Source: Basidiobolus meristosporus CBS 931.73 (lineage: Eukaryota > Fungi > Basidiobolomycota). From it: a DNA stretch of 36,158 nt. Position 1 is the stretch's first letter; each line of letters begins with the position of its first letter. Made by a program: the position numbers and the translations under genes. The notes under the pieces were generated by a model that worked only from the letters and a program-made list of their open reading frames with translations, searched no databases and had not been told where the DNA came from. This document shows, piece by piece, positions 4,278-36,158 of the stretch. The stretch covers positions 1-36,158 of the forward strand of contig MCFE01000789.1 in assembly GCA_002104905.1 (NCBI GenBank), given 5' to 3'.

Positions 4278-4292
4278 ATATATATATATATA
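4278..4292. repeat. (AT)n microsatellite just downstream of the permease stop
   Basis: Direct reading: atatatatatatata. Confidence 0.85.
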
Positions 4293-14469: not shown

Positions 14470-14526
14470 TATGAGGAACGTAAGCGAAGAAGCACCACTT
14501 GGATTGAACACCGAGTTAGTTGCGCG

Positions 14527-14536
14527 ATCACGTGAT
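14527..14536. promoter_or_regulatory. Palindromic E-box ATCACGTGAT (Cbf1/bHLH-Zip type site) in the divergent TASP1-HGSNAT intergenic region
   Basis: Perfect 10-bp palindrome 58 bp upstream of the taspase ATG; function is inferred only. Confidence 0.35.
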
Positions 14537-15445: not shown

Positions 15446-15453
15446 TATATAAG
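15446..15453 (+). promoter_or_regulatory. TATA box (TATATAAG) upstream of HGSNAT
   Basis: Canonical motif about 50 bp before the ATG at 15503. Confidence 0.5.
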
Positions 15454-15502
15454 CAGGGATGCGCTCTGCAATCAGACTAGATCCCTATCCAACAACAGCA
15501 CG

Positions 15503-16807
15503 ATGAATGCCGAGAAGCCGGAAAGCAGGACCGTGGCAGAGGGTGGCTGTACCAACCCTGCCCTCAAAACACAAGATACAGAAATAACCATTTCACAGAC
15601 AGACCGTCTCAAGCAGCACCGTCTAGCGTCATTGGATGTTTCCAGAGGACTTACGATTATGCTCATGATACTTGTCAACTATCAGGTGGAGCCATACATA
15701 CAGCTTGAGCATCCCGAGTGGTTCGGCTTCTCTCTGGCGGACTCCGTCTTCCCGAACTTTGTGTTTATCATGGGGCTGGCTATTCCCTTGGCCATGTCAT
15801 CAGGTAGGAAGCCTGCAGGGTGGAGGCTCTGGCTGCAGGTGTTAAAACGGTTCGTTCTGATCTTTTTAATCGGTGTTTGGGTGAACACGTTTCCGTTCAA
15901 TTCGCCTGATCTGAGTCGATCGTGGAGGCCCTTGGGCGTCTTACAAAGACTTGCTGTGTGCTATCTGGTATGCTCCGTCGCATTCATACTCTGCAGCGGC
16001 AAACCTCGTAGGTCCTGGCAATACTGGTATCTCAGGGTGGGGTTTCCTCTTAGCGCATTCGTGCTCTGGCTGGCGCTTACTTATGGCATCTATGTTCCAT
16101 TTGAAGGGTGCGGCAGAGGTATGCTGACTCCAGAATGCTCTGCAGAGGGATTTGTCGATAGCCAAATCCTTACTGCGGGCCACAACTACAACCAGAAGCT
16201 CTACGATCCCGAAGGGGTGCTCTCGGACATAACCGCATGCATCACCTGTTGGATTGGTATGATGGTCGGCATGAATCTTGTCAAACGACAGGCACAGCTC
16301 TCAGAAACATCCTATTGTTATCAAAAGGTTGCCCAACTCTGTCTGATAGCCATGAGCCTTTTACTTGTGACCTACTTTCTAAACGCTGGAATCCCCATAA
16401 GCAAGGTCCTTTGGACGCCTACATTTGTTTTGATGGCTGGCGCCTTATCCCTCTCCACGCTAGCCATGTTTATGTACCTGGTGGATATTTTGGGCTTGTT
16501 GAATTCCGGGTACAACGTGCTGCGAGGCTTTTTTCGGATGTTTGTTGTCGTCGGGAAGAATCCTTTGTTTCTCTATGTGCTGTCGGAGAACCTGGCCAGC
16601 ATCCTTACCACCATAGAAGTTTCCTCCAACGCCCACTACGCGCAAGATGGAAAGGTGAGTCTGTGGGGACTTCTCTTCCAGGCGGTGCTCGCATCCTGGC
16701 TTCCAACTCGGTTCGCTTCCTTGGTGTGGTCGCTGATATGGGTCTTTTTGATATACGTCCCCATCGCCTTCGTGCTCGACTGGCGTGGATGGTATATACG
16801 AATCTAG
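15503..16807 (+). CDS. HGSNAT: Heparan-alpha-glucosaminide N-acetyltransferase-like membrane protein (HGSNAT/DUF5009 family), single exon, 434 aa
   Basis: RLASLDVSRGLTIMLMILVN, EHPEWFGFSLADSVFPNFVFIMG (family His retained), GVLQRL, YDPEGVL, PISKVLW, GKNPLFLYVLSE. First ATG at 15503 (the track start is GTG). Confidence 0.9.
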   Translation: MNAEKPESRTVAEGGCTNPALKTQDTEITISQTDRLKQHRLASLDVSRGLTIMLMILVNYQVEPYIQLEHPEWFGFSLADSVFPNFVFIMGLAIPLAMSSGRKPAGWRLWLQVLKRFVLIFLIGVWVNTFPFNSPDLSRSWRPLGVLQRLAVCYLVCSVAFILCSGKPRRSWQYWYLRVGFPLSAFVLWLALTYGIYVPFEGCGRGMLTPECSAEGFVDSQILTAGHNYNQKLYDPEGVLSDITACITCWIGMMVGMNLVKRQAQLSETSYCYQKVAQLCLIAMSLLLVTYFLNAGIPISKVLWTPTFVLMAGALSLSTLAMFMYLVDILGLLNSGYNVLRGFFRMFVVVGKNPLFLYVLSENLASILTTIEVSSNAHYAQDGKVSLWGLLFQAVLASWLPTRFASLVWSLIWVFLIYVPIAFVLDWRGWYIRI

Positions 16808-17333
16808 GAGGGCCCGTGACCAAGGACCTACCACAGGTGATAGAAAACCATCCGGCTCCCTCCACACATATCATTACTGAATACCCAGGACGAGAATGAA
16901 TCGTTGAACCCTAACGCCAAAGGGAAAGGGGTGTTGAAAGTTCCACTGCAATAAAATCCCCTCCACTAGATATCCTGCTGAGTGGGACGGGTTCGTACCA
17001 CTGGCACTGACTATGCCCTTCCATCGTGAAGTCAATATACTATGGCAACCAGCATTATTGAGCAGAACTATGTAACAAATCAAAGCACTCCTGGCCAGAG
17101 TCGTCTGATTAAAACACCATCCACCCATGAATCAGTGTTCGTGTGGCTCCAGCACTTCAATCCTCATTGCGTCATAGGAGCTCCCGTGACCATTCAACCA
17201 GCAGGGAATTCATGAGGATGAAGAATCCCTGATTTTCCCTAATTTTTCTAGCAGCCAAGCACACCCTATAGAAATCGCAGGGATCAACAGGCTCCATCAA
17301 AACAGGCCAGCTTCTTTCTCCTAACCATTCACC

Positions 17334-20203
17334 ATGTTTTCAGGACGAGGGAAGAAGAGAGACGTTAGCACCAGAGGAACCAACGAGTGGGAGGAGTTCA
17401 ATTTCGACATACCCAACCTAGATGAGGTGGAGGTTTCGGAGCATCTGGATGAGAACGACCTGAACGATCCCGATTTATTGGTACGTCACGTTGCAGGTTT
17501 GGAGTTGAAAACTATAGTGGAGAGGATCGCTCCGAGACTCGGCTCCACTTATTCTTGCCACTCTCCTCTACGTGTTCATGTTAGGGTTGCAGTATGGATG
17601 TTGCATTATTAACTTGCTTTTTGCTCACTCTGAAGAAAGAGTTGCAGGCTTTAAGTGGTATCGGAGCACCCAAGCCGAAGCCTAAGAGCAAGCCCAAGCC
17701 TGCGGCAAGCCAAAACTACCTGGATGGATTGGACTTGGACGCGTTGCAGAATCTTGGCGACGAGGAGGAGGTGGAGGTAGAACTCACGGAGGAGGATTTA
17801 AACGACCCGAATCTACTAGTAGGTAGTTTCTACGAGCAATGTATCCACGCAATAAGCTGATCAACCCTTTGTACGAACATTTTCGTCTTTTAAGAGTCAA
17901 CTTTCGGCATTCGAGTCTCTGGAGGAGGTGGAGAAGGGCGGTTCTCAAACAACCGCCGTTCCGGAGGTGGACACAGTCCCAGAGCCCTCGAAGGTAGATA
18001 TGCCACCAAGCCACCTCGACACCAACGAAGAAAAGCCCAAAGTGGCCGAAGGGACCCCGGTAACCTGTTCTTCCAACGACGTTGAAAGCAGTCGGGTTGA
18101 GGCGATTCCAAATCTTTCGCCAACAGAAATCGAGGCGGAAGTGCCAGTCAGTCTTGTAGACGTTACCGAGCCAATAGAGCCAACTCCGCCTACCGTGCCG
18201 AAGCCCGACCCATCCGTGCAGATTGAGCTTATCAAGCAAAGGATGCAAGAGTTCAAGCAAGCCGCGCTGTTTTATAAGCGACACAATGACATGCCTACGG
18301 CCAGATCCATGCTTGCCATTTCGAAATCCTTACAACAGCCCCTTGACATCCTCTCTCTCGGTGGGCAACTGGATGAACACTTTGAGCTTCCCAGTGTCCC
18401 GGTACTAACACCACCGCCGACTACTAAGGGCTCGGAGGCAGCGTCTCCAATGCCACCCAAGACCGCTAGCAAGCCAAGTCCCGCGAAGCGGGAGCCGAAG
18501 AGCGACGGAAAGAAAAGCACCAGGTTGCAGGGGGTTACCGAGTCATTTGATCTTCGCGAGGTCATGGAGGACCCGATGGTTAGTCAGGTAAGCAGATCGT
18601 CGATCCTTCAACATCGCAGAAAGTCTCCTCAAGGCCACGCTTAACACGTGACCGTCTTTAGATCACCTCTAAATCCCCCAAGGAGCAATACTCGGAAATG
18701 TGCCGGCAGCTAGAGCAACAGATCACCTACTGTACGTCGATTGCCGCGCACTACTACAAGGCTGGGGAGAAGGCCAGCGCGCTACAGTTTCACAAGCTGA
18801 AGAAGAGTTTCTTGGCCGACCTGGCCTCGCTCCGCTCCTACGAGGAGCACCAAAGGCCGGTTCCGAGATTCCACTACCAAGACGTCACATACATGATCGA
18901 GAACGCCTTCTACGACATCCCGGTGAACGAGATGGAGTTCGAGATCGTCCGCGGGTTTCACCTGGGCGTCAAGGAGGTCAGCGGCAACAACGTCGATGCT
19001 TATGTCAGCTTCGATCTCGGATGGCCCACCGAGGGCTCCGGGCCTGGCAAAGGTGACACCGCGGTGATCCGGAAATCCATGGATCCAGGTAAGCGCGCAC
19101 GAACGTCTTGTGTACCGTACTGCATCTGACCCGACCGACAGAATTCCAATTCAACCGCCGCATCCCGATCGAGCGGACCAGATCTTTCCAGCGGTTCGTC
19201 GAACGGAAGAAAGCGGTGTTCGAGGTGTTCCATTATCGGGGATTCCTATGGCGCGCGGTGTCCCTGGGGAAGGTCCAGGTGAAGCTGGACAGACTGCTCC
19301 ACCGATGTGAGATCCACGAGGTCCTGGAGGTAAGTGATTCGGTTCCGGCGTCTCCACTCGCATCCTAACAAGCTCCCCGTTCGCCCCAGCTGTTGGACGC
19401 CAACCGCAGACCCACGGGCGGAAAGCTGGAGATCAAGATTCGATTACGAAACCCATTGCTCAAAGCCGATATCTCGACCAAATCCGAGAAATGGCTGTTC
19501 CTGGAATTCGATCAACCCGGTAATCCTTCCGCTGCGCCCATACCAGCATCATCCCCAGCCCCAGCCCCCGCCCCCGCCCCCGCCTCCGCTCCAGCACAGC
19601 CAGTTGCCACCGATCCACAGCCTCCTAGAACCGAAGCTTCCCCAACACAGCCAGCAGACGTCGATGTCAAGATGGACGCTCCGTCGCCTCATCCCAGTGA
19701 CAAATCCAAACCGTCACAGCAAAAGAAATCCCAGGCCCCAAGTGCCGTGGAGGAGCCGGACGAGCTTCAACTGGCCATAGAGGAGTTCAACAGGTAAGCA
19801 AATGGTAAACCACACCCCAATCCCCTCGTCCCACTAACATGAACGGCACATCGCAAACAGCCCCGACAAGCTGGTATCGAACATGGTGCTGGAGCAAGAG
19901 CTCCAGCTCGTCCAAGCGCGCATAAGCCAGTCACGCCAACCGGCCGACGACCTACTTGATCGACAACAAGCGTTGGACATCAAGATGAACATGCTTGTGA
20001 TTCAGGTTCAAACCGGCCAGCTCACCATGGACGGCTACCTCCAGCAAGTCCGGGAGGCGATCAGGAGCACCAAACGACTCGCGCTCATCTTCAAAAACCA
20101 CCAGAACATGGAGTTGGCCAAACACGCGCTAGCCAGAATCAAAACCATGTCGCAGGAAGTTGAGGAAGCGGAGAAGGCCATGGCCGAAGGACTGATGGAG
20201 TGA
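17334..20203 (+). CDS. CC2D1: Coiled-coil and C2 domain-containing protein 1 (CC2D1A/B, Lgd homologue), 7 exons
   Basis: Exons 17334-17480, 17636-17818, 17895-18587, 18662-19088, 19142-19329, 19390-19793 and 19861-20203 splice in frame. DM14 repeat (KQRMQEFKQAALFYKRHNDMPTA); C2 domain ending RRPTGGKLEIKIRLRNPL, as in animal CC2D1. Confidence 0.88.
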
Positions 20204-20284
20204 TCCCGCTCCTTCACCCTCGCGCCTCCTCTCGTGCGAGGTCCACTCATTTCGCATACTTCTCCACCTCCACCCTCACCCATG

Positions 20285-20323
20285 CCCACACCTACGCCCA
20301 CGCCCACACCCACACCCACACCC
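20285..20323 (+). repeat. Imperfect (CCCACA)n hexamer repeat downstream of the CC2D1 stop
   Basis: cccaca cctacg cccacg cccaca cccaca cccaca ccc. Confidence 0.85.
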
Positions 20324-20749
20324 ATTCCACGTCTCTAGGCTAGTCTATTGATCGGGCCACCAATGGAATTGAATCACGTTTCAGTGAAACGCGATAACTC
20401 AGAACCCATTAAATTTGATTGAATTCGCCACCGTTCCACGTATCCATCGTCGAGTTCCAATTCGTGAACGCAAGACTGAAGGTGCCACCCGGTCTAGCGT
20501 GCATTTGGTGGCAGCCGAACAACCGCATTTCATGCTGAAAGAGTTCTGGGGGTATTGGGAGCGATTGAGAGGTGTTGCAAATCTTGGGATCTCACCTAAA
20601 TGTTGTCGTCCTAAAGATTTGGTTTGCACCTGAACCATTCGTATGGGGCAAGATTCTCCTTGGCTTGTTGCTAAGTTCTGAATTGTCCACTTGAGGTTTG
20701 GCTCCTAAGATGTGAGCTAATTCTCAGAATCGGTGAGGGCCTGGAAGTT

Positions 20750-22034
20750 ATCAACCCTCTCCAACCTGTCCAAAAGCCCTCGAACTTTTCACACAGCTTC
20801 CTGAGGCCTTATGCCATAGTTTGTTCGCTGGTTCCCAGACCTCCTGTTCTTCAGCCAGCAGTGGATGGCTTGGCACCTTGTCTGCCAGTGTTTGCAATGA
20901 ATCCTTGCAATATTCAAGTGTGTCTTCTTGAGCACCACTCTTCAAGAAGTGTGGCAACCTCTTAGTTTGTGTATTATTGTTCCAAAATTCCACCTTTGGA
21001 ATTGTCATAGCCAACTGAATTCTTGACATTGCTGCCATACTTGCCAGTGGGGTCTCCACACTGTCTACAACAGAGCATGTAGAGGCTACAAAAGGGGAAA
21101 TGCCTTTCTTGGTCAAATACTCCATCTCAATAGAGTGTTGCTCAACTGGCTGAACTTCAAGCTCCTGTGAAAACAATTGTTGTCTTGAGGGTAATCTTCT
21201 TTGTTATTATGAGATGTGGACTGTGCATAGTTAAATTTGTCATTTGGTGAGTGCTGCTGCTATTGCCTCCTTTTTCTCTGTCTCTGACTTGGGCAAGCTT
21301 TCTTTCCTTTCCCTTTTCCTTTACCCTTACCACTGCCAGAACTTTTCCTACTACACTGACTGAGTGCTTCTTGTATTGTACTACATTTCTTGCTTGATAA
21401 ATACTGCATTGATGCTACTGTTTCTGCTTACTTTCCCTTACTGATACTCTGCTGACTTCCTGACATTTCTTGCTATTTACTGGGTGATTTCAGCCTTGCA
21501 TGTGATTGGCTCATGAAGAAGGTGCTAGCATTTTGACCTGATATCCTGCTCTACTCCCTCTGATAATTCTACTACTCACAGGATATCTTCACAGGATTCT
21601 AATGTTAACCCAAAATCCACTTGCCTGCTTAAACTTGGGGTATTGTTCAAGGAACAGGTCATGTGCATTCTGCTTTTCTTTTAGTGCCTGATAGTCCAAT
21701 GGTATGCTAGCCTTTAGATGATTGTTTACCAAAGTTCTTATGGCATCCTGAATATGACCCACTCATTGTTATTGCACCCAATGGCTTCATGGATCTTCAA
21801 TGTCTTTGGATTTTTTGGCTACAGTATCTATATCACAGGCTCACCTTTCCATGCTATGATAGGATTTTCTGCAGGCTCTATTGTTGGTAATATTGTTATG
21901 CAGCAAAAAGCTGAACAACCCTCCACTGCTGCTATGTTGGGACACAGCTTGACTTTTGTGTGCATCATTGAGCTGCTTGAGTTCCTTCCTTATGATATAG
22001 ATATAGCATTCTCCACTTTGCATACTGATTGCTC
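20750..22034 (-). mobile_element. Decayed transposon-derived ORF remnant, family unresolved
   Basis: No CpG between about 20830 and 22034; a minus-strand protein-like frame riddled with TAA/TAG/TGA stops, plus a residual 141-codon ORF at 20751-21176. Confidence 0.5.
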
Positions 22035-22382
22035 TGATGTAAAAATTTGTATTTCCACCTAAATATTCACCTAACTTAGTCACTTAGATCATCACCTTCA
22101 AATCCTAGAGAATACTGACCAAATTCCTTGTTGGGATTTACTTGGAATATTTTCACCAAAATACCAGATACCCAGAAATGAAAATTCTCAAAGTTGTCCA
22201 AACAGCCCCAAACTTTGCACACATGTTCTTGGGACCTTCCTTAACCTATTCTACGTGTTTTTAATGCCAAGACAAGGTAAAAGTATAAATACTACTTTTA
22301 CATTCAATAAATCATTAAGTGAAAACCACCTAATCTACTTGTTCTCCAAATCACTTCCAATATCTCCAAGACTCTTACAACA
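22035..22382 (+). repeat. 5' LTR of copia copy 1
   Basis: TGATG(TGTTG)...CAACA; about 94% identical by eye to 27444-27791. Confidence 0.92.
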
Positions 22383-22394
22383 GGTTATGAGCCC
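22383..22394 (+). other. Primer-binding site GGTTATGAGCCC (initiator tRNA-Met anticodon arm, half-tRNA priming type)
   Basis: Immediately follows the 5' LTR; reverse complement GGGCTCATAACC matches the anticodon stem-loop of fungal initiator tRNA-Met, as used by Ty5 and Drosophila copia. Confidence 0.85.
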
Positions 22395-23142
22395 CAAGCT
22401 GTCACTCTCTGCAATATCTACTACTGCTATTACTGGAATATTTCCCTCTGCTGAAAAGTTGGATGGATCCAACTACCAAGTGTGGAAGGTGAAGATGAAG
22501 ATGCTGCTACAAGAAAGAGGCCTTTGGGATATTGTCATGGGAGAAGAATGCCCTCCTAAAAACATGGGAGAGGAAGCCTTAAAGTATCAGAAGAAAGAAC
22601 AAAGTGCCTTTAACTGCATTTGCCTTAATGTCAAGGACAAATTGCTAATTCAATGCTCAAGAGCAAAAACTGCAAAGAATGCCTGGAAGGCATTAGAAGA
22701 CACCTACCAGTCATGTTCAGCTGCTAAGAAAATGTATCTGAGACAAAAATTCTTTACTACAAAGATACTGCCAGGAGAAGAAATGAAAAATCTAATTAAC
22801 AGAATTACCCTGCTGGTAGATGAGATGGAATCTGTGGGCGTACCAACTACTGATGAGGATGTGATAGTTACCATCCTGAGTAGCCTGACAGACAAGTTTC
22901 AAGGCCTTGTATCAGCCCTAGAGTCCATAACTGAAGATTTGACCTTAAATTACGTATATGGAAGGCTCCTGGATGAAGAATTAAGAAAATCAAGCACCAA
23001 TAAGAAGGAAGAAGAAAATGCTTTGATAAGCAATGATAACCAACAAAGGAGGTACCCAAGACCCTACAAAGGTAACAGCAACCTATTTTGCAACTACTGC
23101 AAAAGGAAAGGACACACATCAGACCGGTGTAGTGGTGTATAG
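22387..23142 (+). CDS. gag: Copia Gag (uninterrupted 251-codon frame, terminated inside the inserted solo LTR)
   Basis: LDGSNYQVWKVKMKMLLQERGLWDIV N-terminal motif, UBN2-like core, and CNYCKRKGHTSDRC zinc knuckle. Confidence 0.85.
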   Translation: MSPKLSLSAISTTAITGIFPSAEKLDGSNYQVWKVKMKMLLQERGLWDIVMGEECPPKNMGEEALKYQKKEQSAFNCICLNVKDKLLIQCSRAKTAKNAWKALEDTYQSCSAAKKMYLRQKFFTTKILPGEEMKNLINRITLLVDEMESVGVPTTDEDVIVTILSSLTDKFQGLVSALESITEDLTLNYVYGRLLDEELRKSSTNKKEEENALISNDNQQRRYPRPYKGNSNLFCNYCKRKGHTSDRCSGV

Positions 23143-24201
23143 GTCCAAGGGAGAGATATGTCCAACACTTCTCAAGTGTTTTGTGTGTGGGGTGTTCACT
23201 GGGTGCAATAACCTCTGGCAAAAGCTTGCTAGGAATACTTGGGTTCTGTTTCTAATCTAATGTGAAGGGGAATAAAGCCACAAGCTTGTCAAGGGAAAAC
23301 TATTGAGCTACAATCCCCAACTTAGTTGGTGTCTTAACAAAAGTATGTGCTGGGTTCAGTGTCCTTTGAGATGACAATGTACCAAAGCTTCCAAAGTCAA
23401 AACAACTGTAAACTCCACCAGCAGGGACTTGATAAGAATGCAGCTGTGGTCAATAGTTACAAAGACAGAAAAGTATCTTTGCCTGTACAAGAACAAACTT
23501 GGGAAAGAATCAAATATAATAAAAGATACCTACTCTGAGTATTCCTCACAAGTAGTGCCTCCAAGGTCAGTTGGCTGTCAGCACGGCTTACTGGGAGTGT
23601 CCTGTGGTCTAGGGTTGGAAGTTCAGGTAGCAGCAGGTAGCAGTGATCACGCTAATCAACAAGTCAGTATATTGATAAAAGGGATGATGATGATTTATTG
23701 TAGAGGGATAGCCTCCCTTATATACTTTTCTCACTGGCTAAGTGATTACTAATCATGGTGTTCCAGAAGGTTCCAGATATCAATAGAAATCTTAATGACA
23801 TCAGAATGACCTAAGAATGCTCTAAGTAGGTGCTGGAAGGTTCTAAGAGGCACAGCACATCCAACCAATCAGGAATCAGTATTCTGAAACCTGTGTAACA
23901 TGGGGATACCATATATGGTATGGAAATGGTAGGGATGGTGACACGGGTTGATCATGTGTCACAGGTACTGGCGCAGGTACTTGCCTAATATAGAAGCACT
24001 TGTAGCTAGTAATCTTACATAAAGTGAGGGGTAACTTATGCAATAAGGTAAGCAGGTGTAATAGTCAACTGGCTTATGGGATAGTACTGATTGGGTAAGA
24101 CAAATAGGATAAAACTAAAATGAGTGTAGTAGGGATATAGGGAAGTAGAAAACAAGGGAATGAGCACATCTGTCAGTGGGTGTCACTGTCACCCCACTAC
24201 A
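23128..24201 (-). mobile_element. Solo LTR (1074 bp) of an unrelated element inserted into copia copy 1
   Basis: TGTAGTGG...CCACTACA terminal inverted repeats; CCGG duplicated at 23124-23127 and 24202-24205; removing it restores gag-pol (SDRC-LKKK). Minus-strand TATATAAG (23724-23717) and AATAAA (23699-23694) suggest orientation. Confidence 0.85.
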
Positions 24202-24205
24202 CCGG

Positions 24206-27200
24206 TGTCTCAAAAAGAAAGATAATCAGCAAAAGAAGCCTGAATATGGAAATGCTGCAACAACAGAAGATAGACCATTCATATCTGCACTAAATATAAC
24301 CACAAACAAAGATTCTCAGATGTGATATATTGACTCTGGAGCATCTCAACACTTTACACACCAAAAAGAACTTTTTACCTAATATCAAGAAATTCCAATC
24401 AAGAAGGTTTTCATGGGTGACAATAGAACACTTGATGCAGTGGGAGAAGGAACTATCCAAGTAAACCTTAGAAGCAGTGAAGGAAGCCATGCACTGACCT
24501 TTAAAGAAGTACTCTATGTACTAGAAATAGCCAAGAACCTACTCTCTGTAAGCAAGGCTACAGCAGAAGGACTCAGTTTCAGTTTTGACAATTCTGGATG
24601 CAAGATCACTGATCAAAATGGTGCCCATATTGCTTTGGGCATCAGAGATCAGAATCTATACAAGTTGACTTATATTCCATCATATTTGGAAGCTAATATA
24701 AGTAACTTAAATGAAGAAACACCTATGCTTTGGCATAGGAGATTTGGACACATCAATTTTGATTATTTGCGTAAAATGATCAAAGATCAGCTTATTTCTG
24801 GAGTGAAAATTGATCCCCCAGCTAATTTGGAGCACTGTGAAGCCTGCATATATGGGGAACAAGCCAGACAACTGCTCAAGAGCTCTGGGCTAATCAAAAC
24901 TAAGAAAAAATTAGATCTAATTCACTCAGATCTGTGTGGACCTATGCAAAATTTATCCTTAGGTGGGATGAAGTATTTAATCCCTTTTATTGATAATTAT
25001 GCAAGATATACATGGGTCTACTTCATGGAGAGAAAGGAAGAAGCTCTGTCTAAGCTCAGGGAGTTCAAAACCATGGTGGAGAGAGAAACTGATGAAAAAA
25101 TCAAGAAAAAACGCTCTGACAATGGTGGAGAATACACCTCAAAACTCTTCATCCACTTCTGCAAAATTCATGGGATAAAGCAAGAGACTACTGTACCATA
25201 CTCCCCAACGCAAAATGGAGTAGCAGAACAAGCTAACAGATCAATAATTGATATGGCAAGATCTATGATCCATGATCAAAAATTATCATATGATTTTTGG
25301 GTGGAATCAGTTGCCACTGCTGTATACCTTAGAAATAGGAGTTATACAGAATACTTTGTGATTCTACTCCATTTGAAGCATGGCATAGATACAGACCAAG
25401 TGCAGAACATCTAAGAATATTTAGGTGTATAGTATATGCCAAAAAACTGGCCAGAAATCAGTCAAAATTTGAGCCAAAAAGTGTAAAATGCATATTTTTA
25501 GGCTACTACAATGAGAGTAAGGCATACAGACTCTACAATACCAAGGCAAAGAAGCTGATCAAGTCCAGGGATGTGTTGTTTGATGAAAATTCAAAATTTA
25601 CACAAAAAATGACATCAGATGAGGATGAAAATTTGATCTCAAGTCCACCAATTGTCAGGATTGAATCAGAGCAAAACAATGAAAATTTTTTCACTCCAGA
25701 GGACTCTAAAGCCATGGTTCAGCCAGAATCAGTGCCCAGGAATATCCTGGAAGTGATCATTCCAGTATCAAATGCCCAGAGATCCAATTGGACAAGAAAT
25801 AACCCAATTACTATATCAATGAGGGTACAAACTTAGCCTATGCCTATTCAGTCCATGTTGATGAACCCCAGACTGTAGAAGAGGCCCTAAATAGCCCTCA
25901 ATCAAAGTTTTGGAGATCTCCAATGACTGAGGAATATCAGGCCCTGATGGAAAATCAAATTTGGGACTTAGTCAAATTATCAATCAACCAAAAATCAATT
26001 GGATGCAGATGGGTCTTCAAGACAAAATACAAGGCTGATGGTACAATTGAAAGATACAAAGCAAGACTTGTAGCTAAAGGATACTCTCAAACAAAAGGAC
26101 TTGACTATACTGAGACCTTTGCACCGGTAGCCAAGTTTAATTCCATCAGATTAATATGGGCTATTGCAGCCAAATATGAGTTTATATTCATCAAATGGAT
26201 GTAAAAGCTGCATTTTTGCATGGAGAACTTGATGAGGACATGTATATGGACCAGCCTGATGGATTTGTTGACCAAGATAACCCCCATTTGGTCTGCAAGC
26301 TTAAAAAGTCACCATATGGTCTCAAACAATCACCAAGAGCCTGGAATTGCAAGATAAATTCTTATTTGGAATCCTTGGGTTTCAAAAGAAGTAATGCTGA
26401 CTATAGTATATACTATAAGCCAGATAGAGCAAATCCAGTTATATTAGCTCTATATGTGGATGATCTTATTATAGCCACCAATAACCTAGAAACATTGGAA
26501 GAGACTAAATCCTGCCTATCTAAGGAGTTCAAGATGTCTGATTTAAGAGAACTTAGTTAATACTTAGGGATTAAGTTCTCCATAGACAGAAGTACCCAGA
26601 CTATCACCCTAAGCCAATCCAAGTATATTCAAGATATACTAAAGAAGTACCAAATGGAAGACTGTAAACCGGCAGCTACCCCAATGGAGACAAACCTTAA
26701 CTTGGTCAAAATTCAACCAAATCAAGAGAGCTTGGTGCCATCTGAAAGCCTTGACTTTCCTTATCAATCAATGGTTGGCAGTCTGATGTATATCATGCTT
26801 GGAACATGTCCAGATATCTCATATTCAGTGGGAGTTGTCAGCCAACATAATCAGAACTATGGATCTGATCATATTGCAGCAGTTAACGGATTTTTAGATA
26901 CCTAAAAGGAACTGCTGATATCTGCCTAAGATACACTTATAATGATTCAGAACAGGATCTTGTGGGATACTCTGATGCTGACTGGGGACAAAATTTGGAA
27001 GACAGAAGATCCACCACAGGATACAACTTTCTTTACTGTAAAGGAGCAATTTCATGGAATTCAAGAAAGCAACCAACTGTAGCACTTTCCACCACAGAGG
27101 CAGAGTATATGGCGGCCTATGAAGCTACAAAAGAAGCAATGTGGTTAAGAAAACTTTTTACAGATTTAGGCCTATGTCAAAAAATGCCTATTACTTTATT

Positions 27201-27432
27201 TCAAGATAATCAAGGATGTGTACAATTAGGTAGAAATCCTACTTTTCATGCTAGAACCAAGCACATAGATATTAGACATCATTTCATACGTGATGCTATA
27301 GAGAATAACTTAGTTAGCTTAGTTTACTGTCCTACAGATGAAATGATTGCAGACATATTTACCAAACCATTAGCTAGAGACAAGTTTGAATATCTTAGGT
27401 CAAAATTAGGACTAGTCAGTATAAACATTTAG
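24206..27432 (+). pseudogene. pol: Copia pol pseudogene (protease, integrase, reverse transcriptase, RNase H)
   Basis: (W>stop)YIDSGASQH at 24323; LWHRRFGH...CEAC; IHSDLCGP, RSDNGGEY, QNGVAEQANR; KARLVAKGY; YVDDL; GYSDADW, EAEY, ADIFTKPL. Several frameshifts (e.g. about 25345 and about 26190). Confidence 0.93.
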
Positions 27433-27434
27433 CT

Positions 27435-27443
27435 GAGTGGGAG
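27435..27443 (+). other. Polypurine tract of copia copy 1
   Basis: GAGTGGGAG immediately before the 3' LTR; the identical tract precedes the LTR of copy 2 (34025-34017, minus strand). Confidence 0.75.
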
Positions 27444-27791
27444 TGTTGTAAAAATTCGTATTTCCACCTAAATATTGACCTAACTTAGTCACTTAGATCA
27501 TTACCTTCAAATCCTAGAGAACACTGACTAAATTCCTTGTCAGGATTTACCTAGAATATTTTCACCAAAATACCAGGTAACCAGAACATGAAAATTCTCA
27601 AAGTTGTCCAAACAGCCCCAAACTTTGCACACATGTTCTTGGGACCTTCCTTAACCTATTCTATGTGTTTGTAATGCCAAGACCATGTAAAGTATAAATA
27701 CTACTTTTACATTCAATAAATCATTAAGTGAAAACCACATGGTCTACTTGTCCTCCCAATCACTTCCAATATCTCCAAGACTCTTACAACA
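27444..27791 (+). repeat. 3' LTR of copia copy 1
   Basis: TGTTG...CAACA, 348 bp. Confidence 0.93.
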
Positions 27792-29898
27792 CATCATTGG
27801 CTCAACCTGACTCTGCACTGATTGGTGATATTTCTGAATCATAGCCTCTATCCTATGAGCACCTACTTCTAATTGCCTTATTGATACATTTTTTCCAATG
27901 GACTGCACCTAGTCATGAGGCATCATCTGTGGTTAATGAGAGTGTTCAGGCAAAATGTAGCAGCTAGCAGTGGGCAAGCTTGCTCCTGGACAGTTATGCA
28001 TTATGTGCCAATACTTTGCACATCACAAAGCTATCTCACTCAATGAGGTTGGTGCAGATAATTAAGCAAGCTGTGATGCTTGACTCACATGCGAAACTGG
28101 AGGCCACTATTGTGGCAGGTAAGATTGGGTATTTGATTTTTTTTGACGTAAAGGAAATACATGCATATTTAACTCTAGATACCCTAATATTTGTCATTCC
28201 AATTCCCATCCTTCTGAGTTGATAGAATGTCACTGGTTTATTGATTTATATGCATGCTGATGCTCTAGCCCCTGTTGACCCAGAAGCCAATCAACAAGCT
28301 ATCAAATATGCCAATACATATTCTACTGACATCAAAGGTGGTCACTTTTGGCATAGTTAGAATTCAGCTGATATTGTGGTGGTGGTTGGCTGTCCGTTTA
28401 TTGATTTTTCTCTTTGAGATAACCAATTAGCAAGGTATTATGACTCATCAAGAAATACCAAACCTTGCCTTTTAAGCATATAGACCCTACAACTTGAAGA
28501 CCAGGCAAGGTGCCATAACTAGCATGCAAGTGACCAGGCAAGTAAAAAAAGAGCAAGTAGCTGCACCAGTGCTACATATGATGTATTCATAAGCAGAGTG
28601 TTTATTTAAAGGGGTTATATTGCAAGTCTTAGACCAACTTGTTGTTACTTAAATCTAAATGTAGTGATCATAGGTTTGCAATAGTTCAACTTGGATGTCT
28701 TAGTCAACTCTGTAGTGTTGGATCAGGATAGTCATAACAACTCAACTCAACTATATTACAATATAGTTTTTTTCCTCACCTGGATTGCTACTGCAGCATC
28801 TGGTAGTGAGCTACTTTGCTCACCTAAACTATCCCTTTGCCACCTATCATCTTAGCTTCTTGTTTACTACTAATTAATGTTATCTACACACTTGCTAACA
28901 ATAGCAAGATGTGGCATTTTGGCACAAATTGGTTCACTCTGGTAGACCTGTGCATAAATGGGCAGCTTTGCAAGTTCTTGTAGTTTGCCCTGAGCCATGT
29001 GTTGTAGAATGTTGGGGTACTCCAGGGAGAAGCCACACAACCAAAAGAGCATGAGGTATCTGATGGGTGCACTAACCTCCAGGGCTAAACTGCTGACATC
29101 ACTATCACTATGCTACTATGGTAAATGCTTCTACTTCTCTAGCTTCCTAGGGGCTCCAGGTATCTCCAAAGGCCTCTGTATATCTATTGCACAGCCCTGA
29201 GCAGCACCTTGATGGCAAGTCTGAGGTGCAACAGTTGAAGATCCATTTGAGAAACATTGGGCTCCATAGACAGATCCAATCAGGATCAGCTATTGGGATT
29301 CCATCACAAGGTTGTCATAAACCAGCAGCCTGGAATTATTGACCTCTAGACAATCTTGTGGCAGGATTGTGATGGTGGTTTGCTGGTTTTACTGCAAAAC
29401 AAAGTTATTAACTTTGCATTATTTAATTGACCTTTTGGTAAGTATTACATGGCATTTTGATGGTCTTAATAGACCTGTTCCATTTTACTGTGACAGAATG
29501 TGTGGCACAATTCTTGGTTGTTAAGAACAATCAGGCACACTACTGTAGCTACCAGTAGGCAGGACTGCTCTTGGACAATTTTGCACTAGCTGGGACAATC
29601 CTGCACACTAGGGCACAATCTGACACAATGAGGTTGGCTTGGATGACTGCACCAACTGGTAATGTATAATTCACATGCACAATTGGATACTACTGTTGTG
29701 GCAGTTAAAAGCAGCTGTTTGGATATGTTTCTTTAATGTAAATGGAAATAAATGCATATCACACTATACACTATACTGATACTTACAATTCTGATTAACA
29801 TCACTCCAATTATACAGTATGTCAGTGATTGATTAGTCTAAAAGTATCTTGAAGCTGTGAGCCCACCAATTGGCTTATTTGCCAATGTGACTACTAAA
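27792..29898. mobile_element. Decayed repeat-derived DNA, family unresolved
   Basis: 3 CpGs in about 2.1 kb; no long ORF or recognisable motif. Confidence 0.4.
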
Positions 29899-32800
29899 TG
29901 TAGTACCCACTCTTTGCCCAAGAGTTCTCCCCTGGGTCCTACCCAAAGTCCCCCAGTATGCACCCTATGATTCCCCCATGTGTCCCCCTCCTATTCCTGC
30001 CCTTATCTAGTGAGAACACTTACCATAACAGGAAGGTGTTTACACCCCTATTTTATGGCATATTGCCTATTATCTAAGCCCCTCCAAGTGATATATATAT
30101 ATCCAATTGAACCAAGTGAGAGAACAACAAGATTTAGATGGAATATACACAGGCCTTTATTTCCTTGCTACCTTCTATCAGAAGCTATTCTGAATCCAAT
30201 GGTACTGACTTGACCTACAAGCTCTCCCACTCACCAAGTAGAGTCAGTAATAACCCACATATTTGGTGCCATTTCTGCAGAAATAAGTACAAGTGAGGTA
30301 ATGACTACAACAATCAAACTAAAAACATACCAGGGAAAGAGAGAGAAAGCCCTTGAGTGGTTTGATAAGTTTGAGAGAGTTGCGGTTGATGCAGGATGGG
30401 ACAACAATAAGAAAGTAAGGGAGTTTGCAAGATATATGGAAGGGTCAGCATGGCAATGGCATTATGGGTTGGATGATGCAGCTAAAGTTGACTAGGATGC
30501 ACTAGAAGAAGCCTACAAGACACGCTTTTTATATGCCAAAGGATACCACAACAAAGCCCTTCTACTGACCTCACAGAAGAAAAGCAGTGAGAGCTATAAA
30601 GCCTACACTGAGCTGTTTCTCCAACAAGTTTGAAGTCTCCCAAAGGACAAAATTGCCAAACCACAGCTCATTAGGTAATACATCATGGGCTCAGATAACA
30701 AAGTAAGATGTAGGGCATCCAATGAACAACAGGGATGTAAATGTTGCAAGAGTTGGTCAAACAAGTACCAGGGGTCTTCTTGCTATGGGGGCTACCCTAT
30801 AGTGATACAAGTGCTTGAGGGATAGGGATCCCCTGTAAGAAAGGAAAAATTGCATCCCCAAAAGACTGTGAGCCAGAAGATTTACAGCAAAAGGTCCAAG
30901 AACTCTTGATCAGAAATGTCCAAGAAGTCCCCAAAGTTGGTGATAAACTCTGGGAAGCTGTTGTAGATCCAAAGGCCCAGGTGCAAGCCCTAACTCAGCA
31001 GTTGGAACAACCACAATGACATTATCCATGTTATGTATGTGGAGAAGTTGGCCACCAGGCCCACAAATGTGAAAAATGCTACAGCCAAGAACCTGTATCA
31101 GACACAAAACAGAAGAAAGCATCAAAAGACAGAGTCCCTTGCCAGGAGGCCAAAAGGACTCAGTCAATATAAGCCCTCCAGTTAGAACAGTTAAGTGAGG
31201 AAGAAGAAGTGTCAACATGCTGCTTCTAGAGAGGAGGCAAAGGAACCTGTAGTAGAGGTTCTGACAAAAGGAAAGAATGTGGAATTAGATGAAGAAATAC
31301 AGAATGAGCCTTGGGCAGAAGTGTTGAAGCAAACAAAGAATGCTAGTATATCTTCCCACAGCCTATTCCCCATAATGAAGGTACTAGAGCAAACCAAGGC
31401 AACCCTCCCAATGACCAATTTGCTGAGACTTGCCCTAGCTCTAGTCAAGGAACTGATAGAGGGATTGAAGGAGATAACAACCGTTCATGTCAACCAGACA
31501 GTCCTACAAAAACCAAATAAGGGTACATACATAAAGGTATGTATAGAGAATAATGATATTCTCACCCTTATCATCACAGGATCCTCTACATTGATCATAT
31601 CAGAGTCATTAGCAAAATAGACTTGTTCCGTTGGATAGTGCCACATTGAGCCATGAGTGCCAAATGATGCCATAGTGTGCCAGGGAGGCTAAGTGAGCCT
31701 ATACTTGGCCACAGAGTGTGAAACATAGATCTGCATCTTCATGCAAAGCAGCCCCTGTGTTTCACCAATTGTGTTGGAGAAAATCCACTTTTTGACCTTT
31801 TTTATTAGGTCAATGTTGTGCAGGATGTGTAAGAGCACAAAAGGATTGAAAATATGCATCAGGTACTCAATACCCATGGCACTCTGAATCTAGCTCCTGT
31901 GGCTTGTAACATGTCACAACAATGCATGGCACTATCTTGGTCCACTGGTACTATCTGGCACTATATTTAATTATTAGCCCTAAAGTAAGATCTATACAAA
32001 GCACTTATAGTGCCAGATAGTACCAGTGGACCAAGATAGTGCCATGCATTGTTGTGACATGTTACAAGCCACAGGAGCTAGATTCAGAGTGCCATGGGTA
32101 TTGAGTACCTGATGCATGTCTTCAGTTCTTCTGTGCTCTTACACATCCTGCTTAACATTGATCCACAAAAAAACGTCAAAAAATGGATTTTCTCCTGCAT
32201 CATAGGTGAAACACAGGGGCTGCTTTGCATGAAGATGCAGATCCATGTTTCACACTCTGTGGCCAAGTATAGGCTCACTTGGCCCCTCTGGTACACAATG
32301 GCATCATTTGGCACTCATGGCTCAATGTGGCACTATCCAACGGAACAAGTCTAATGTCTAAAGTTAGATATAGTCCACAACAACACCATTTTGGTATGGC
32401 TAGCAAATGACCAACTGGACACAACAGTAGGAATGGTGCCTAATTGCCCCATCTGGCAGGTAAGTTGATTATACACCAAGATGTTGTAGTCCTACCCATT
32501 GCAGCCAATGACTTACTCATTGCCAAGAGTTGGTTTATCCAACATATGATGGACATACTCTACAGTGCATCTGAACTCAGGTGGGATACTGAGAGTATCC
32601 CACTGATTCATATTGCCAATGAGAGCAAGGCGTGTAACTACAGTGTGACAATCAAAGAGGTGAAACCATTACAATCTCCAATCAACACACAAAAGGTAAT
32701 AAAAATACCACCAGCTAGTGAGGGAGTGATTGCATTAGAGACACCAATAGCTTATTTGACAAGTGGAAGAATGATAACTGCAACAAAGGTATCCAAGCAA

Positions 32801-33667
32801 CTGGAAGGAATCTCAATCCCTAAAGTATAGATACTGCTGAAATTTGAAACGCAAAGTCTGAAGTGCTTAGTGGTTATCAATGGGCAACATGTGGTGACAT
32901 TGCCTAGAGGAGTGCCATTGTTAAACCTAGAGGAGGCTGACAGAAACAACCAAGGACCGCTTACAAAAAAGGATACTGAGGAGGAACTCTGCAAACTAAA
33001 GGTGGACCCCAGTCTACTGCCTTTGTTACAAGACAAGTTCCTAGAAAGAATACACCTGCTTGCCCAAATATTCTCTAAGAGCCAAGTAATTGGCCATATA
33101 CCTGGGGTATATCACCAAATCCACCTTGCCAACAAATACACCATGAAGCAAAAAGCCTATAGGAACTTGAAAATTGACACTGATTATATCAAAGAGACAG
33201 TTGAAACTTTGTTAAAGGATGACATCATTACAGAGAGCCATTCTGTGTGGGCCTTCCCTGTAGTGATAGTTCCAAAGAAAGATGGAAAGCAATGTTTTTG
33301 CATTGGCTGCTGAAAATTGAATGCTGTTACCCAGACAGATGTGTGTCCACTACTGCAAATTGATGACCTCTTGGACAGATTAGTTGGAGCTAAATATTTT
33401 AGCTCTCTTGACTTAATCTGTGGGTATTGGCAAGGTAGAAGTAGTCCCAGAAGATTGACCCAAAACTGCCTTTATAAGATTGTTTGGATTACACAAATAG
33501 AACCAACTATCCTTTGGCTTGTGTAATGCTCCTGCTACATTCCAAAGGATGATCAGCAAGGTGCTAGGAAATTTATGCTGGGAATGCACTCATTTTTATC
33601 TGGACAACATCACAATATATTCCCATAGTGTAGAATAACATATACACAACATGCAATGCATCCAAAC
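29899..33667 (+). mobile_element. Decayed Ty3/gypsy LTR retrotransposon, 5' part (interrupted twice; remainder beyond copia copy 2)
   Basis: Gag from 30301 (LEWFDKFE...GWDNNKK...MEGSAWQW); CYVCGEVGHQAHKC knuckle at 31029-31070; decayed protease (LIITGSST); RT (WAFPVVIVPKKDGK...IDDLLDRLVGAKYFSSLDL...GYWQ...LDNITIYS). PBS-like TGGTGCCATT at 30264. The 5' LTR limits (29899-30259) are tentative. Confidence 0.88.
31620..32351. mobile_element. Foldback/MITE-like non-autonomous DNA element with 346-bp terminal inverted repeats and TA target duplication
   Basis: 31620-31965 is the reverse complement of 32006-32351 with a 40-bp spacer; TA at 31618-31619 and 32352-32353; excision restores the gypsy protease frame. 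Confidence 0.88.
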
Positions 33668-34016
33668 TGTTGTAAGAGTCTTGGAGATATTGGAAGTGAT
33701 TGGGAGGACAAGTAGATTATGTGGTTTTCACTTAATGACTTATTGAGTGTAAAAGTAGTATTTATACTTTACATAGTCTTGGCATTACAAACACATAGAA
33801 TAGGTTAAGGAAGGTCCCAAGAACATGTGTGCAAGGTTTGGGGCTGTTTGGACAACTTTAAGAATTTTCATGTGCTGGGTACCTGGTATTTTGCTGAAAA
33901 TATTCCAAGTAAATCTCAACAAGGAATTTTGGTCAGTATTCTCTTGGATTTGAAGGTGATGATCTAAGTGACTAAGTTAGGTGAATATTTTGATGGAAAT
34001 ACAAATTTTTACAACA
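33668..34016 (-). repeat. 3' LTR of copia copy 2 (349 bp)
   Basis: Reverse complement TGTTG...CAACA, homologous to both LTRs of copy 1. Confidence 0.92.
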
Positions 34017-36158
34017 CTCCCACTCAGCTAAATGCTCATACTAACTAGTCCAAATTTTGACCTAAGATATTCAAACTTGTCTCTAGCTAATGGTGTGGTA
34101 AATATGTCTGCAATCATTTCATCTGTAGGACAGTAAACTAAGCTAACTAAGTTATTCTCTATAGCATCACGTATGAAATGATGTCTAATATCTATGTGCT
34201 TGGTTCTAGCAAGAAAAGTAGTATTTCTACCCAATTGTATACATCCTTGATTATCTTAATATAAAGTAATAGGCATTTTTTGACATAGGCCTAAATCTGT
34301 AAAAGGTTTTCTTAACCACATTGCATCTTTTGTAGCTTCACAGGCTGCCATATACTCTGCCTCTGTGGTAGAAAGTGCTACGGTTGGTTGCTTTCTTGAA
34401 TTCCATGAAATTGCTCCTTTACAGTAAAGAAAGGTGTATCCTGTGGTGGATCTTCTGTCTTCTAAATTTCATCACCAATCAGCATCAGAGTATCCCACAA
34501 GATCCTGTTCTGAATTGTTATTAGTGTATCTTAAGCAGATATCAGCAGTTCCTTTTAGGTATCTAAAAATCCGCTTAACTGCTGCAATATGATCATATCC
34601 ATAGTTCTGATTATTTTGACTGACAACTCCCACTGAATATGAGATATCTGGATGTGTTCCAAGCATGATATACATCAGACTGCCAACCATAGATTAATAA
34701 GAAAAGTCAAGGCTTTCAGATGGCACCAAGCTCTCTTGATTTGGTTAAGTTTTGACCAAGTTAAGGTTTGTCTCCATTGGGGTAGCTGCCGGTTTACAGT
34801 CTTCCATTTGGTACCTCTTTAGTATATCTTGAATATTTTTGGATTGACTTGGGGTGATAGTCTGGGTACCTCTGTCTATGGAGAACTTAATCCCTAAGTA
34901 ATAATTAAGTTCTCCTAGATTGGACATCTTGGACTCCTTAGATAGGCAGGATTTAGTCTCTTCCAATGTTTCTAGGTTATTGGCAGCTATAATAAGATCA
35001 TCCACATATAGAGCTAATGGAACTGGATTTGCTCTATCTGGCTTATAGTATATACTATAGTCAGAATTACTCCTTTTGAAGCTCAAAGATTCCATATAAG
35101 AATCTATCTTGCAATTCCAGGCTCTTGGCAATTGCTTGAGACCATATAGTCACTTTTTAAGCTTTCAGACCAAATGGGGGTTATCCTGGTCAACAAACCC
35201 ATGAGGCTAGTCCATATACTCATCCCCATCAAGTTCTCTATTCAAAAATGCAGCTTTTACATCCATTTGATGGATAAAAAACTTATATTTGGCTGCAATA
35301 GCCAAAATTACTCTGATGGACTAAATCCCAAGTTTGATTTTCCATCAGGGCCTGATATTCCTCAGTCATTGCAGATCTCCAAAACTTTGTCTGAGGACTA
35401 TTGAGGGCCTCTCTCACAGTCAGGGGCTCATCAATATGGACTGAATAGGCATAGGCTAAGTTTGTACCCTCATTGATATAGTGATTGGGCTATTTCTTGT
35501 CTGATTGGATCTCAGAGCATCTGATACTGGGATGATCACTTCTGGGATATTCCTGGGCACTGACTCTGGCTGAAACATGGTTGTAGAGCTCTCTGGAGTG
35601 AAAAAACTTTAATTGTTTTGCTCTGATTCAATCCTGACAATTGTTGGACTTGAGATCAAATTTTTGTCATCATCTGATGTCATTTTTTGTGAAAATTATG
35701 AATTTTCATCAAACAACACATCCCTGGGCTTGATCAACTTCTTTGCTTTGGTATTGTAGAGTCTGTATGCCTTACTCTCATTGCAGTAGCCCAAAAAATA
35801 TGCATTTTACACTTTTTGGCTCAAATTTTGACTGATTTACGGCCAGTTTTTTGGCATATGCTGTACATCCAAATATTCTTAGATGCTCTGCACTTGGTCT
35901 GTATTCATACCATGCTTCAAATAGAGTAGAATCACAAAGTATACTGTTATAACTCCTATTTCTAAGGTATACAGCAGTGGCAACTGATTCCACCCAAAAA
36001 TCTTAGGATAATTTTTGATCATGGATCATAGATCATGCCATATCAGTTATTGATCTGTTAGCATGTTCCACTACTCCATTTTGCTGTGGGGAGTATGGTA
36101 CAGTAGTCTCTTGCTTTATCCCATGAATTTTGCAGAAGTGGATGAAGAGTTTTGAGGT
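33668..36158 (-). mobile_element. Second copy of the same Ty1/copia family, inverted, 3' half only (runs off the window end), inserted in the gypsy RT
   Basis: Integrase C-terminus, RT (YVDDL), RNase H (GYSDADW, KHIDIRHHF), PPT and LTR all align to copy 1; carries a roughly 170-bp RT deletion. Confidence 0.93.

Follow-up and report, generated by a model that had tools for sequence, protein, structure and literature searches.

Transposon-restricted, TCG-biased loss of CpG in the early-diverging fungus Basidiobolus meristosporus

By what process have about 94% of the CG dinucleotides disappeared from the transposon half of a fungal contig? The window analysed here is one entire NCBI contig (MCFE01000789.1, 36,158 nucleotides) of Basidiobolus meristosporus CBS 931.73. 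A sequence-only reading of it had described a repeat-restricted, RIP-like erasure of CpG with a preference for TCG/CGA, and had guessed at an early-diverging fungal host. The guess was right: Basidiobolus belongs to Zoopagomycota sensu lato and is not a rust-type basidiomycete, the kind of host in which such a signature is already known.

CpG loss is confined to transposon-derived DNA

The repeat block at positions 20830-36158 (GC 39.6%) contains 35 CpGs versus 599.7 expected from base composition, an observed/expected ratio (o/e) of 0.058, in agreement with an earlier hand count of about 35 in 15.3 kb against several hundred expected. The contexts of the residual sites were likewise reproduced in full: ACGG 9, ACGC 8, ACGT 6, CCGG 5, CCGC 4, GCGC 1, and just two TCG/CGA, at 27457 and 28092. 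As an internal control, the gene island (2001-20829; GC 48.5%), with a xanthine/uracil permease (2493-4256), a bZIP ORF and others, has 926 CpGs (o/e 0.76), of which 455 (49%) are TCG/CGA, the share of about half that had been expected. Comparing these tetranucleotides between repeats and genes, as had been proposed, gives 2/35 versus 455/926 (Fisher p = 8e-8; binomial p = 4e-8). By class, o/e in the repeat block is 0.113 for CpGs without a flanking T or A (89% of non-TCG CpGs are lost) and 0.008 for those with one TCG half-site, while TCGA is absent against 54.7 expected. TpG and CpA are enriched in the block (o/e 1.40 and 1.28; genes, 1.17 and 1.14). Its left edge is abrupt, with the last CpG at 20826 and the next at 22254, and the left end of the contig (1-2000) is another CpG-poor repeat block, unclassified, with three CpGs versus about 70 expected.

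The desert opens with an unclassified repeat (20830-22034), part of which (21190-21405) matches transposable element (TE) islands at two other loci, L005 and L009, at 70%. It is followed on the plus strand by a copia element, whose 5' LTR (22035-22386) and 3' LTR (27444-27791) are 93-94% identical and whose internal region (22387-27443), interrupted by stops, retains Retrotran_gag_2 (gag), gag_pre-integrs, rve and RVT_2. Nested within it is a plus-strand solo LTR of 1074 bp (23128-24201) with a CCGG target duplication at both sides and empty-site joints; it belongs to a young family with 96% identical copies on contigs L007 and L008. The residual TCG at 27457 lies in the 3' LTR, and T makes up 67% of the read depth from other copies at this site. 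The other residual TCG/CGA site, 28092, lies in degraded, unclassified repeats (27792-33663), parts of which recur in L007/L008 at 68-80%; the label 'gypsy' given to this stretch was not confirmed, because a search of 19 ORFs there found no Pfam domain. It includes a foldback (31618-32353) with two 348-nucleotide arms, 93% complementary and spaced by 40 nucleotides. A second, partial copia copy lies inverted on the minus strand (33664-36158; its 3' LTR at 33664-34016), matches 25136-27791 at 93% and is truncated by the contig end. Sequencing reads aligned to the copia (741 variant rows) showed it to be a member of a huge family. In the protein collection just one close copia relative was found, an intact element on an ENA metagenome contig (CpG o/e 0.15; TCG/CGA at 10 of 18 CpGs), and an exact look-up there of nine TE ORFs and one gene ORF from the window gave no match. 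The TE proteins of the B. meristosporus genome carry no annotation.

The same pattern was found in the TE blocks of L007 and L008, with TCG/CGA at 12 of the 117 residual CpGs pooled. For non-T-flanked CpG, CpG with one TCG and TCGA, respectively, o/e is 0.335, 0.060 and 0 in L007 and 0.136, 0.015 and 0 in L008, as against 0.69-0.73, 0.83-1.02 and 0.85-1.26 in the gene regions of three contigs. Unrelated repeat families on three contigs share the TCG bias. Across 234 residual half-sites, T at position -1 occurs at 0.17 of expectation, whereas positions -2 and -3 are flat; only position -1 of the flank is biased. The loss stops sharply at the edges of TE blocks, even around a 1.5-kb TE island amid genes (L009 2965-4547), and regional spreading of CpG loss was rejected on the same sharp edges. 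Both the restriction of the erasure to transposon-derived DNA and its special severity at TCG/CGA, as claimed in the sequence-only reading, thus extend over three contigs.

Order, rate and age of the loss in aligned copies

Alignment of the copia copies gave 47 inferred ancestral CpGs, 21 of them (45%) TCG/CGA. CG survives at 1 of 68 TCG/CGA copy-sites versus 11 of 77 others (Fisher p = 0.005), so C-to-T change is not equal across NCG contexts; counted per site, CG is kept in any copy at 1 of 21 TCG/CGA sites versus 7 of 26 others, a marginal difference. Between two copia copies, 12 of 24 adjacent double differences are TG/CA swaps, and the reciprocal pairs reported earlier, ttgtTGgg/ttgtCAgg between LTRs and aatTGgac/aatCAgac, are real. 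Because such reciprocal states occur among paralogous copies and between the LTRs of one element, loss within the genome is proven, and the CpG loss postdates the divergence of the copies, as had been proposed. An ancestor already poor in TCG/CGA, which the sequence-only reading had named as evidence against its claim, is seen in the young solo-LTR family (2 of 16 CpGs) and not in copia (21 of 47).

Among the young solo LTRs, whose copies are still 96% alike, non-TCG CpG is already gone in 45% of cases, versus about 1% change at other sites, a rate about 30-40 times background per cytosine. TCG is lost about 4-15 times faster than other CpG, per strand; the two TCG/CGA sites of the solo-LTR family were not lost faster (3/6 versus 23/42), a comparison without statistical power. 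The suggested preference for TCG therefore stands as a bias and not as a specificity, since CpG is lost in all contexts. From 45% in these copies the loss rises to 86-98% in copies 85-93% alike; it is gradual and increases with copy age.

Along each copy, changes on one strand and on the other follow in random order (runs tests, P = 0.16, 0.70 and 0.93), with no strand clustering of the mutations. Outgroup polarisation yielded just 76 lineage-specific changes, too small a set for rates in 16 contexts; 28 were C>T and 23 T>C, and neither CpA nor TC was favoured. A TC-specific, APOBEC-like deaminase was rejected, as the aligned copies showed no C>T excess at TC outside CpG. In a recent 14.7-kb duplicate (L005/L009), the TE island carries eleven substitutions.

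Methylation, mutation or inheritance

Canonical RIP mutates any duplicate above a few hundred base pairs and about 80% identity, genes included, and is usually called where (CpA+TpG)/(ApC+GpT) falls below about 1.03. Three 1.6-kb permease genes, 99.5% alike and lying within 10 kb, a tandem pair of P5CR genes (91%) and the 14.7-kb duplicate (99.3%) all keep normal CpG and a normal TCG share (o/e 0.73-0.80, about 50% TCG/CGA), which shows that the loss is independent of simple duplication. In TE blocks (CpA+TpG)/(ApC+GpT) is 1.39-1.50, so the composite RIP index is negative; TpA/ApT is 0.84-1.0. Same-strand mutation tracts are absent, and a published gene survey found no RID/DNMT4. C-to-T transitions are indeed concentrated in repeated DNA, and other entomophthoralean fungi give a hint of RIP-like composite indices (10.1101/2023.09.13.557621). 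A duplication-triggered, RID-dependent process of the Neurospora type with its target moved to CpG/TCG is nevertheless contradicted by the spared gene duplicates and is extremely improbable; 'RIP-like', taken literally as repeat-induced, does not describe this locus.

Nearly as improbable is that the elements were already poor in CpG and TCG on arrival, either because their lineage has that composition or because they came by horizontal transfer out of a host that methylates, and that the pattern was inherited with no host process. The intact metagenome relative, already CpG-poor, and the TCG-poor solo-LTR ancestor fit such an origin. However, the polarised comparisons largely refute it as sole cause: paralogues and the LTRs of a single element carry reciprocal TG/CA states, the copia ancestor and the intact relative have TCG/CGA at 45% and at 10 of 18 of their CpGs, and unrelated families on three contigs share the bias. 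Inheritance holds only in the sense that the same mutational pressure, acting on TE lineages over long times, has this composition as a by-product.

A published inventory (PMC10538959 source data) credits B. meristosporus with DNMT1 (ORX99839), UHRF1, HELLS and CDCA7F, together with two Dim-2-clade DNMTs (ORX98566 and ORX84408), and detected no DNMT3, DNMT4/RID or DNMT5; it gives no 5mC reference for the species. The seven sequencing runs listed include no bisulfite, EM-seq or RNA run. The loss is CpG-specific, TE-restricted, post-divergence and TCG-biased, and it probably reflects CG methylation targeted to TEs and subsequent deamination, biased towards TCG. The methylation itself, the enzymes and the source of the bias are inferences. 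The DNMT1/UHRF1 maintenance pair, with one or both Dim-2-like enzymes, would be the probable agents of a selective CG methylation of transposon-derived DNA, and methylated C would deaminate to T site by site, turning CG into TG or CA. Per strand, loss of C would be about 4-15 times faster after T than after A, C or G, which would leave TCG/CGA near-extinct in old copies, with a thin residue of ACG, CCG and GCG, partly newly created sites. The data match this expectation in the CpG-specific loss with reciprocal TpG/CpA products (47 sites, copia alignment) and in single-site events on either strand that build up with age. In mammals, spontaneous 5mC deamination is slower at TCG than in the three other NCG classes, and a 5' T preference is not known to belong to DNMT1-type maintenance; the TCG bias therefore needs an extra cause, which may be that TCG/CGA is methylated more fully or that T:G mismatches are repaired less well in that context.

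An active enzymatic hypermutation of (T)CpG in transposons is a possible, if unlikely, alternative. A DNMT-like or other deaminating activity would convert C (or 5mC) to T, perhaps at one stage of the life cycle, with chromatin or small RNA, and not simple duplication, as its guide. Its appeal lies in the very high rate (higher still for TCG), in a direction of bias unlike ordinary mammalian decay, in the presence of two Dim-2-clade DNMTs and in the motif, which with position -1 alone mattering matches the Pucciniomycotina signature (PMC3318451). Moreover, CpGs that have newly arisen within old copies hardly ever have a TCG/CGA context, and this implies that fresh TCG sites are still being acted on de novo. 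Yet the loss scales with copy age and is not all-or-none, TG and CA products alternate randomly along each copy, every CpG context is affected, no TC signature exists outside CpG, no RID homologue is reported, and gene duplicates 91-99.5% alike are unaffected. Doubtful, too, is a dedicated TE-directed, TCG-recognising mutator (a de novo methylase-deaminase or a methylation-coupled deaminase) that would be a functional homologue of the rust and smut TpCpG process; if true, an active CpG-context hypermutation defence would be older than the Dikarya/zygomycete split and would work without RID.

Relation to known systems

The closest likeness is the TpCpG hypermutation of Pucciniomycotina (Microbotryum, Puccinia, Melampsora, Rhodotorula; Hood 2005, Horns 2012, PMC3318451), in which C>T is likewise in excess at TE CpGs, T-preceded C is hit hardest with other CpG still above non-CpG, genes are spared, a RID homologue is absent and the mechanism is unproven. 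Unlike those fungi, Basidiobolus lies outside Dikarya, with the whole Dikarya stem between it and the rusts; its depletion is far deeper (o/e 0.06); and it is reported to lack DNMT5 and to have Dim-2-like enzymes, whereas a Masc2-like DNMT1 is the sole Dnmt1-family gene in three Pucciniomycotina species (Amselem 2015, PMC4352252). TE CpG depletion in rusts is now interpreted as 5mCpG deamination (10.1101/2025.05.29.656941). Such deamination, as in rusts such as Austropuccinia, in Agaricomycotina, Tuber and animals, shares with Basidiobolus the TE-restricted CpG loss, the gain of TpG/CpA and the site-by-site course graded with TE age; the strong T bias at position -1 falls outside that general model. 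With Neurospora crassa the likeness ends at C>T transitions that irreversibly inactivate repeats: duplication as trigger, CpA target, same-strand tracts and RID dependence do not hold in Basidiobolus.

Early-diverging fungi are usually viewed as 6mA organisms with little 5mC, generally described as near-undetectable (PMC13297926), which weighs against the methylation reading, and the TpCpG signature is usually seen as special to Pucciniomycotina. In the available text on the 6mA-rich lineages of Linderina pennispora (Zoopagomycota), Phycomyces blakesleeanus and Rhizophagus, 5mC is mostly CG on repeats (PMC11258239, PMC8298701), being limited to repeats in the first two (PMC11258239), which favours that reading; the repertoire of DNMT1 plus Dim-2-like enzymes appears common to them and Basidiobolus, and that text makes no mention of a TCG bias. 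Theirs are methylomes, whereas Basidiobolus offers an evolutionary footprint alone. In a culturable Basidiobolus strain, transposons are short of 90-99% of their CpG under the same one-base flank rule, which suggests that cytosine methylation or a linked process has kept transposons in check here for a long evolutionary time. Basidiobolus would thereby be a new host lineage for a bias that earlier reports describe only in rust and smut fungi, here most likely a methylation scar; as the earlier reading had supposed, we found no description of it for Basidiobolus in the literature searched. The cause of the TCG bias, be it a flank preference of the enzyme, a bias in T:G repair or active deamination, can now be sought in a second, distant system, and the context gradient offers a ready prediction for a methylome. 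RIP indices based on CpA will overlook TE inactivation of this kind in zygomycete genomes. In B. ranarum, one locus has a small CpG-poor block with just six CpGs, three TCG/CGA and three other.

CpG loss in the window

The repeat block (20830-36158; GC 39.6%) contains 35 CpGs by direct count against 599.7 expected (o/e 0.058), and the gene island (2001-20829; GC 48.5%), our internal control, contains 926 (o/e 0.76). The edge of the desert is sharp, with the last dense CpG at 20826 and the next at 22254; a second desert, holding 3 CpGs, occupies positions 1-2000. Only two residual CpGs in the repeat block, at 27457 and 28092, have a 5' T or a 3' A (TCG/CGA; 2 of 35); in the gene island, 455 of the 926 CpGs do (Fisher p = 8e-8). 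Relative to the expectation from base composition, CpGs of the repeat block stand at 0.113 without a T/A flank and at 0.008 with one TCG half-site, and TCGA, expected 54.7 times, does not occur. The sequence-only reading had given the same CpG count, to the digit, and its tetranucleotide contexts for the 35 sites, including the two TCG/CGA, agree exactly with ours.

One component of the block is a copia element (22035-27791); its LTRs, 350 bp long, are 93-94% identical to each other, and its gag, pre-integrase, integrase and RVT_2 domains are interrupted by stops. Nested within it is a solo LTR of 1074 bp (23128-24201; TGTAG...CTACA), which has the target duplication CCGG on both sides, and is absent from some copia copies in public reads; relatives 96% alike lie on two other contigs (L008 18649-19721 and L007 18004-19093). 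A second copia copy, partial and inverted (33664-36158), is 93% alike to the first, and a foldback (31618-32353) has 348-nt arms with 38 differences, transitions and transversions mixed, among them one TG/CA swap. Because an ORF search found no Pfam domain in the roughly 6 kb of unclassified repeats, the 'gypsy' label given earlier to part of the block was not confirmed. The gene island holds a permease gene (2493-4256) that shares 98% identity with a protein of B. meristosporus CBS 931.73. Public reads of this strain are extremely rich in the copia family: in one sequencing run, 155,821 Logan contigs match 22035-27791 at a likeness of at least 80%, and many internal-deletion joints are seen.

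Recurrence on other contigs

Loci surrounding permease paralogues on further contigs of the assembly were examined; two of them reach blocks of transposable elements (TEs). The block in L007 (14071-21206) has 60 CpGs, eight of them TCG/CGA, and that in L008 (15884-21634) has 22, including two TCG/CGA; when the 35 sites of the window's repeat block are added, TCG/CGA make up 12 of 117 residual CpGs (binomial p = 4e-19 versus 0.49). Observed/expected ratios for CpGs without a T/A flank, with one TCG half-site and as TCGA are 0.335, 0.060 and 0 in the L007 block and 0.136, 0.015 and 0 in the L008 block; gene regions of the same loci give 0.69-0.73, 0.83-1.02 and 0.85-1.26. TCG is lost first, most clearly in the least decayed blocks. 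Among 234 strand-symmetrised residual half-sites, T at position -1 occurs at 0.17 of expectation and positions -2 and -3 are flat, placing the bias at -1 only; in genes, T at -1 is mildly favoured (1.18 of expectation). Amid genes on L009, a 1.5-kb island of LTR fragments (2965-4547) shows equal CpG depletion between flanks of normal CpG density, and the effect therefore tracks the element, not the region. The loss of CpG and TCG from TEs is real, strong and genome-wide across the sampled loci.

The gene parts (window 2001-20829; L002, L007, L008 and L010) have a context bias opposite to that of the TEs, with o/e of 0.85-1.26 for TCGA and about 0.70 for CpG without a T/A flank. Codon usage and mild methylation are candidate causes.

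Timing, rate and context of the loss

Comparison of copies shows that CpGs were lost by mutation after the copies had diverged. Where the two copia copies of the window differ at two adjacent bases, 12 of the 24 cases are TG/CA swaps, bearing out the reciprocal TG/CA states reported by the sequence-only reading. In an alignment of six copia sequences (the two window copies, three L008 fragments, and an intact relative, 85% identical, on the ENA metagenome contig L001), 47 sites have states limited to CG, TG, CA and TA. TCG/CGA make up 21 of these 47 inferred ancestral CpGs (45%), so the copia ancestor had a normal TCG/CGA share. In B. meristosporus copies CG is kept at 1 of 68 TCG/CGA versus 11 of 77 other copy-sites (Fisher p = 0.005), a difference that is marginal at the level of sites (1 of 21 versus 7 of 26). 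The intact relative has TCG/CGA at 10 of 18 CpGs; at nearly all of its CpGs, whatever the context, the window copies read TG or CA. Its contig (ERZ27274739 contig k141_126514) encodes long intact copia ORFs of 570 and 302 aa, and this copia, with a CpG o/e of 0.15, presumably represents a younger copy from a different Basidiobolus-like organism. In the copy at L008 14984-17246 (L8a), decayed CpGs read TG at 8 sites versus CA at 21; the window copia copies lack this strand asymmetry (20:19 and 15:15).

Sixteen ancestral CpGs were inferred for the solo-LTR family from three copies, which are 96% alike. Non-TCG CpGs survive at 23 of 42 copy-sites, with other sites about 1% different per copy; per cytosine, they decay roughly 30-40 times as fast as non-CpG cytosines change to T. 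From the class-wise o/e values, we estimate that T-flanked cytosines are lost roughly 4-6 times as fast as others if TEs decayed purely from a gene-like start, and roughly 14 times as fast at mutation-decay equilibrium. The sequence-only reading had named, as evidence against itself, a lack of TCG/CGA already present in consensus or young copies; this holds for the solo-LTR ancestor (2 of 16 CpGs) and not for the copia ancestor. Over the long term, TE lineages have thus felt the pressure in their non-coding parts as well.

Some residual CpGs are new, not survivors: 23651 is A in 99.6% of the read depth of other copies, and several window CGs face AG or TG in the outgroup. Newborn CpGs are almost never TCG/CGA, which suggests that an activity directed at TCG continues to work de novo. 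A few non-TCG CpGs (copia alignment column 2680, GCGG, and the window CCGG at 23125 and 24203) are kept in all copies examined, so CpGs are retained less evenly than one uniform decay rate would predict; such sites are possibly unmethylated or protected.

Duplication, methylation and the TCG rule

The sequence-only reading had proposed a candidate RIP-like defence; in the literal sense of induction by repeats, this is contradicted by the gene duplicates. Three 1.6-kb permease genes within 10 kb (L003; 99.5% alike) retain their CpGs, as do tandem P5CR genes (91%) and a 14.7-kb duplicate shared by L005 and L009 (99.3%); all three sets have a CpG o/e of 0.73-0.80, with about half TCG/CGA. Duplication as such is thus not the trigger. 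In the TE blocks, CpA-type RIP indices are negative ((CpA+TpG)/(ApC+GpT) 1.39-1.50), and TG and CA products follow in random order along copies (runs tests, P = 0.16, 0.70 and 0.93). Canonical RIP is effectively excluded. C>T changes outside CpG had no excess of 5' T or of CpA, which also disfavors a TC-type deaminase.

The likeliest mechanism, which we consider probable, is CG methylation that would be aimed at TEs, followed by deamination of methylated CG that would be biased by a single 5' base (TCG). For B. meristosporus, Funabiki et al. (eLife 2023; PMC10538959, source data) list DNMT1 (ORX99839), the Dim-2-clade proteins ORX98566 and ORX84408, DNMT2, UHRF1, HELLS and CDCA7F, with DNMT3, DNMT4/RID and DNMT5 not detected and a 5mC reference absent. 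CpG-type TE mutation has been tied to Masc2-like DNMT1 (Amselem et al. 2015; PMC4352252), and a 2025 rust preprint (10.1101/2025.05.29.656941) attributes TE CpG depletion to 5mCpG deamination. An active TCG-directed hypermutator, as proposed for rusts, seems to us unlikely. Horns et al. 2012 (PMC3318451) found TpCpG hypermutation in each of four Pucciniomycotina and in none of four Agaricomycotina and Ustilaginomycotina species tested, and they remark that an influence of the 5' flank on methylation would have no precedent. The signature in Basidiobolus is of the same kind as that TpCpG signature, in a new host lineage.

Among early-diverging fungi, 5mC is reported to be restricted to repeats in Linderina and Phycomyces (PMC11258239), and a 2026 review (PMC13297926) describes it as near-undetectable. 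Stajich et al. (10.1101/2023.09.13.557621) report composite CpA-type RIP indices for Entomophthorales and state that RIP is known from Dikarya alone. In the literature searched on Basidiobolus and methylation, CpG, RIP or DNMT, we did not find the signature described. It is of interest mainly because it provides another system, and a culturable one, in which to study the unexplained TCG rule, and because it points to substantial control of TEs linked to 5mC in a fungus rich in 6mA.

The xanthine/uracil permease family, with its triplicate at L003 6281-15270, has at least nine paralogues, and the pair L005 4372-19136 and L009 1-14747 could be a recent segmental duplication or haplotigs.
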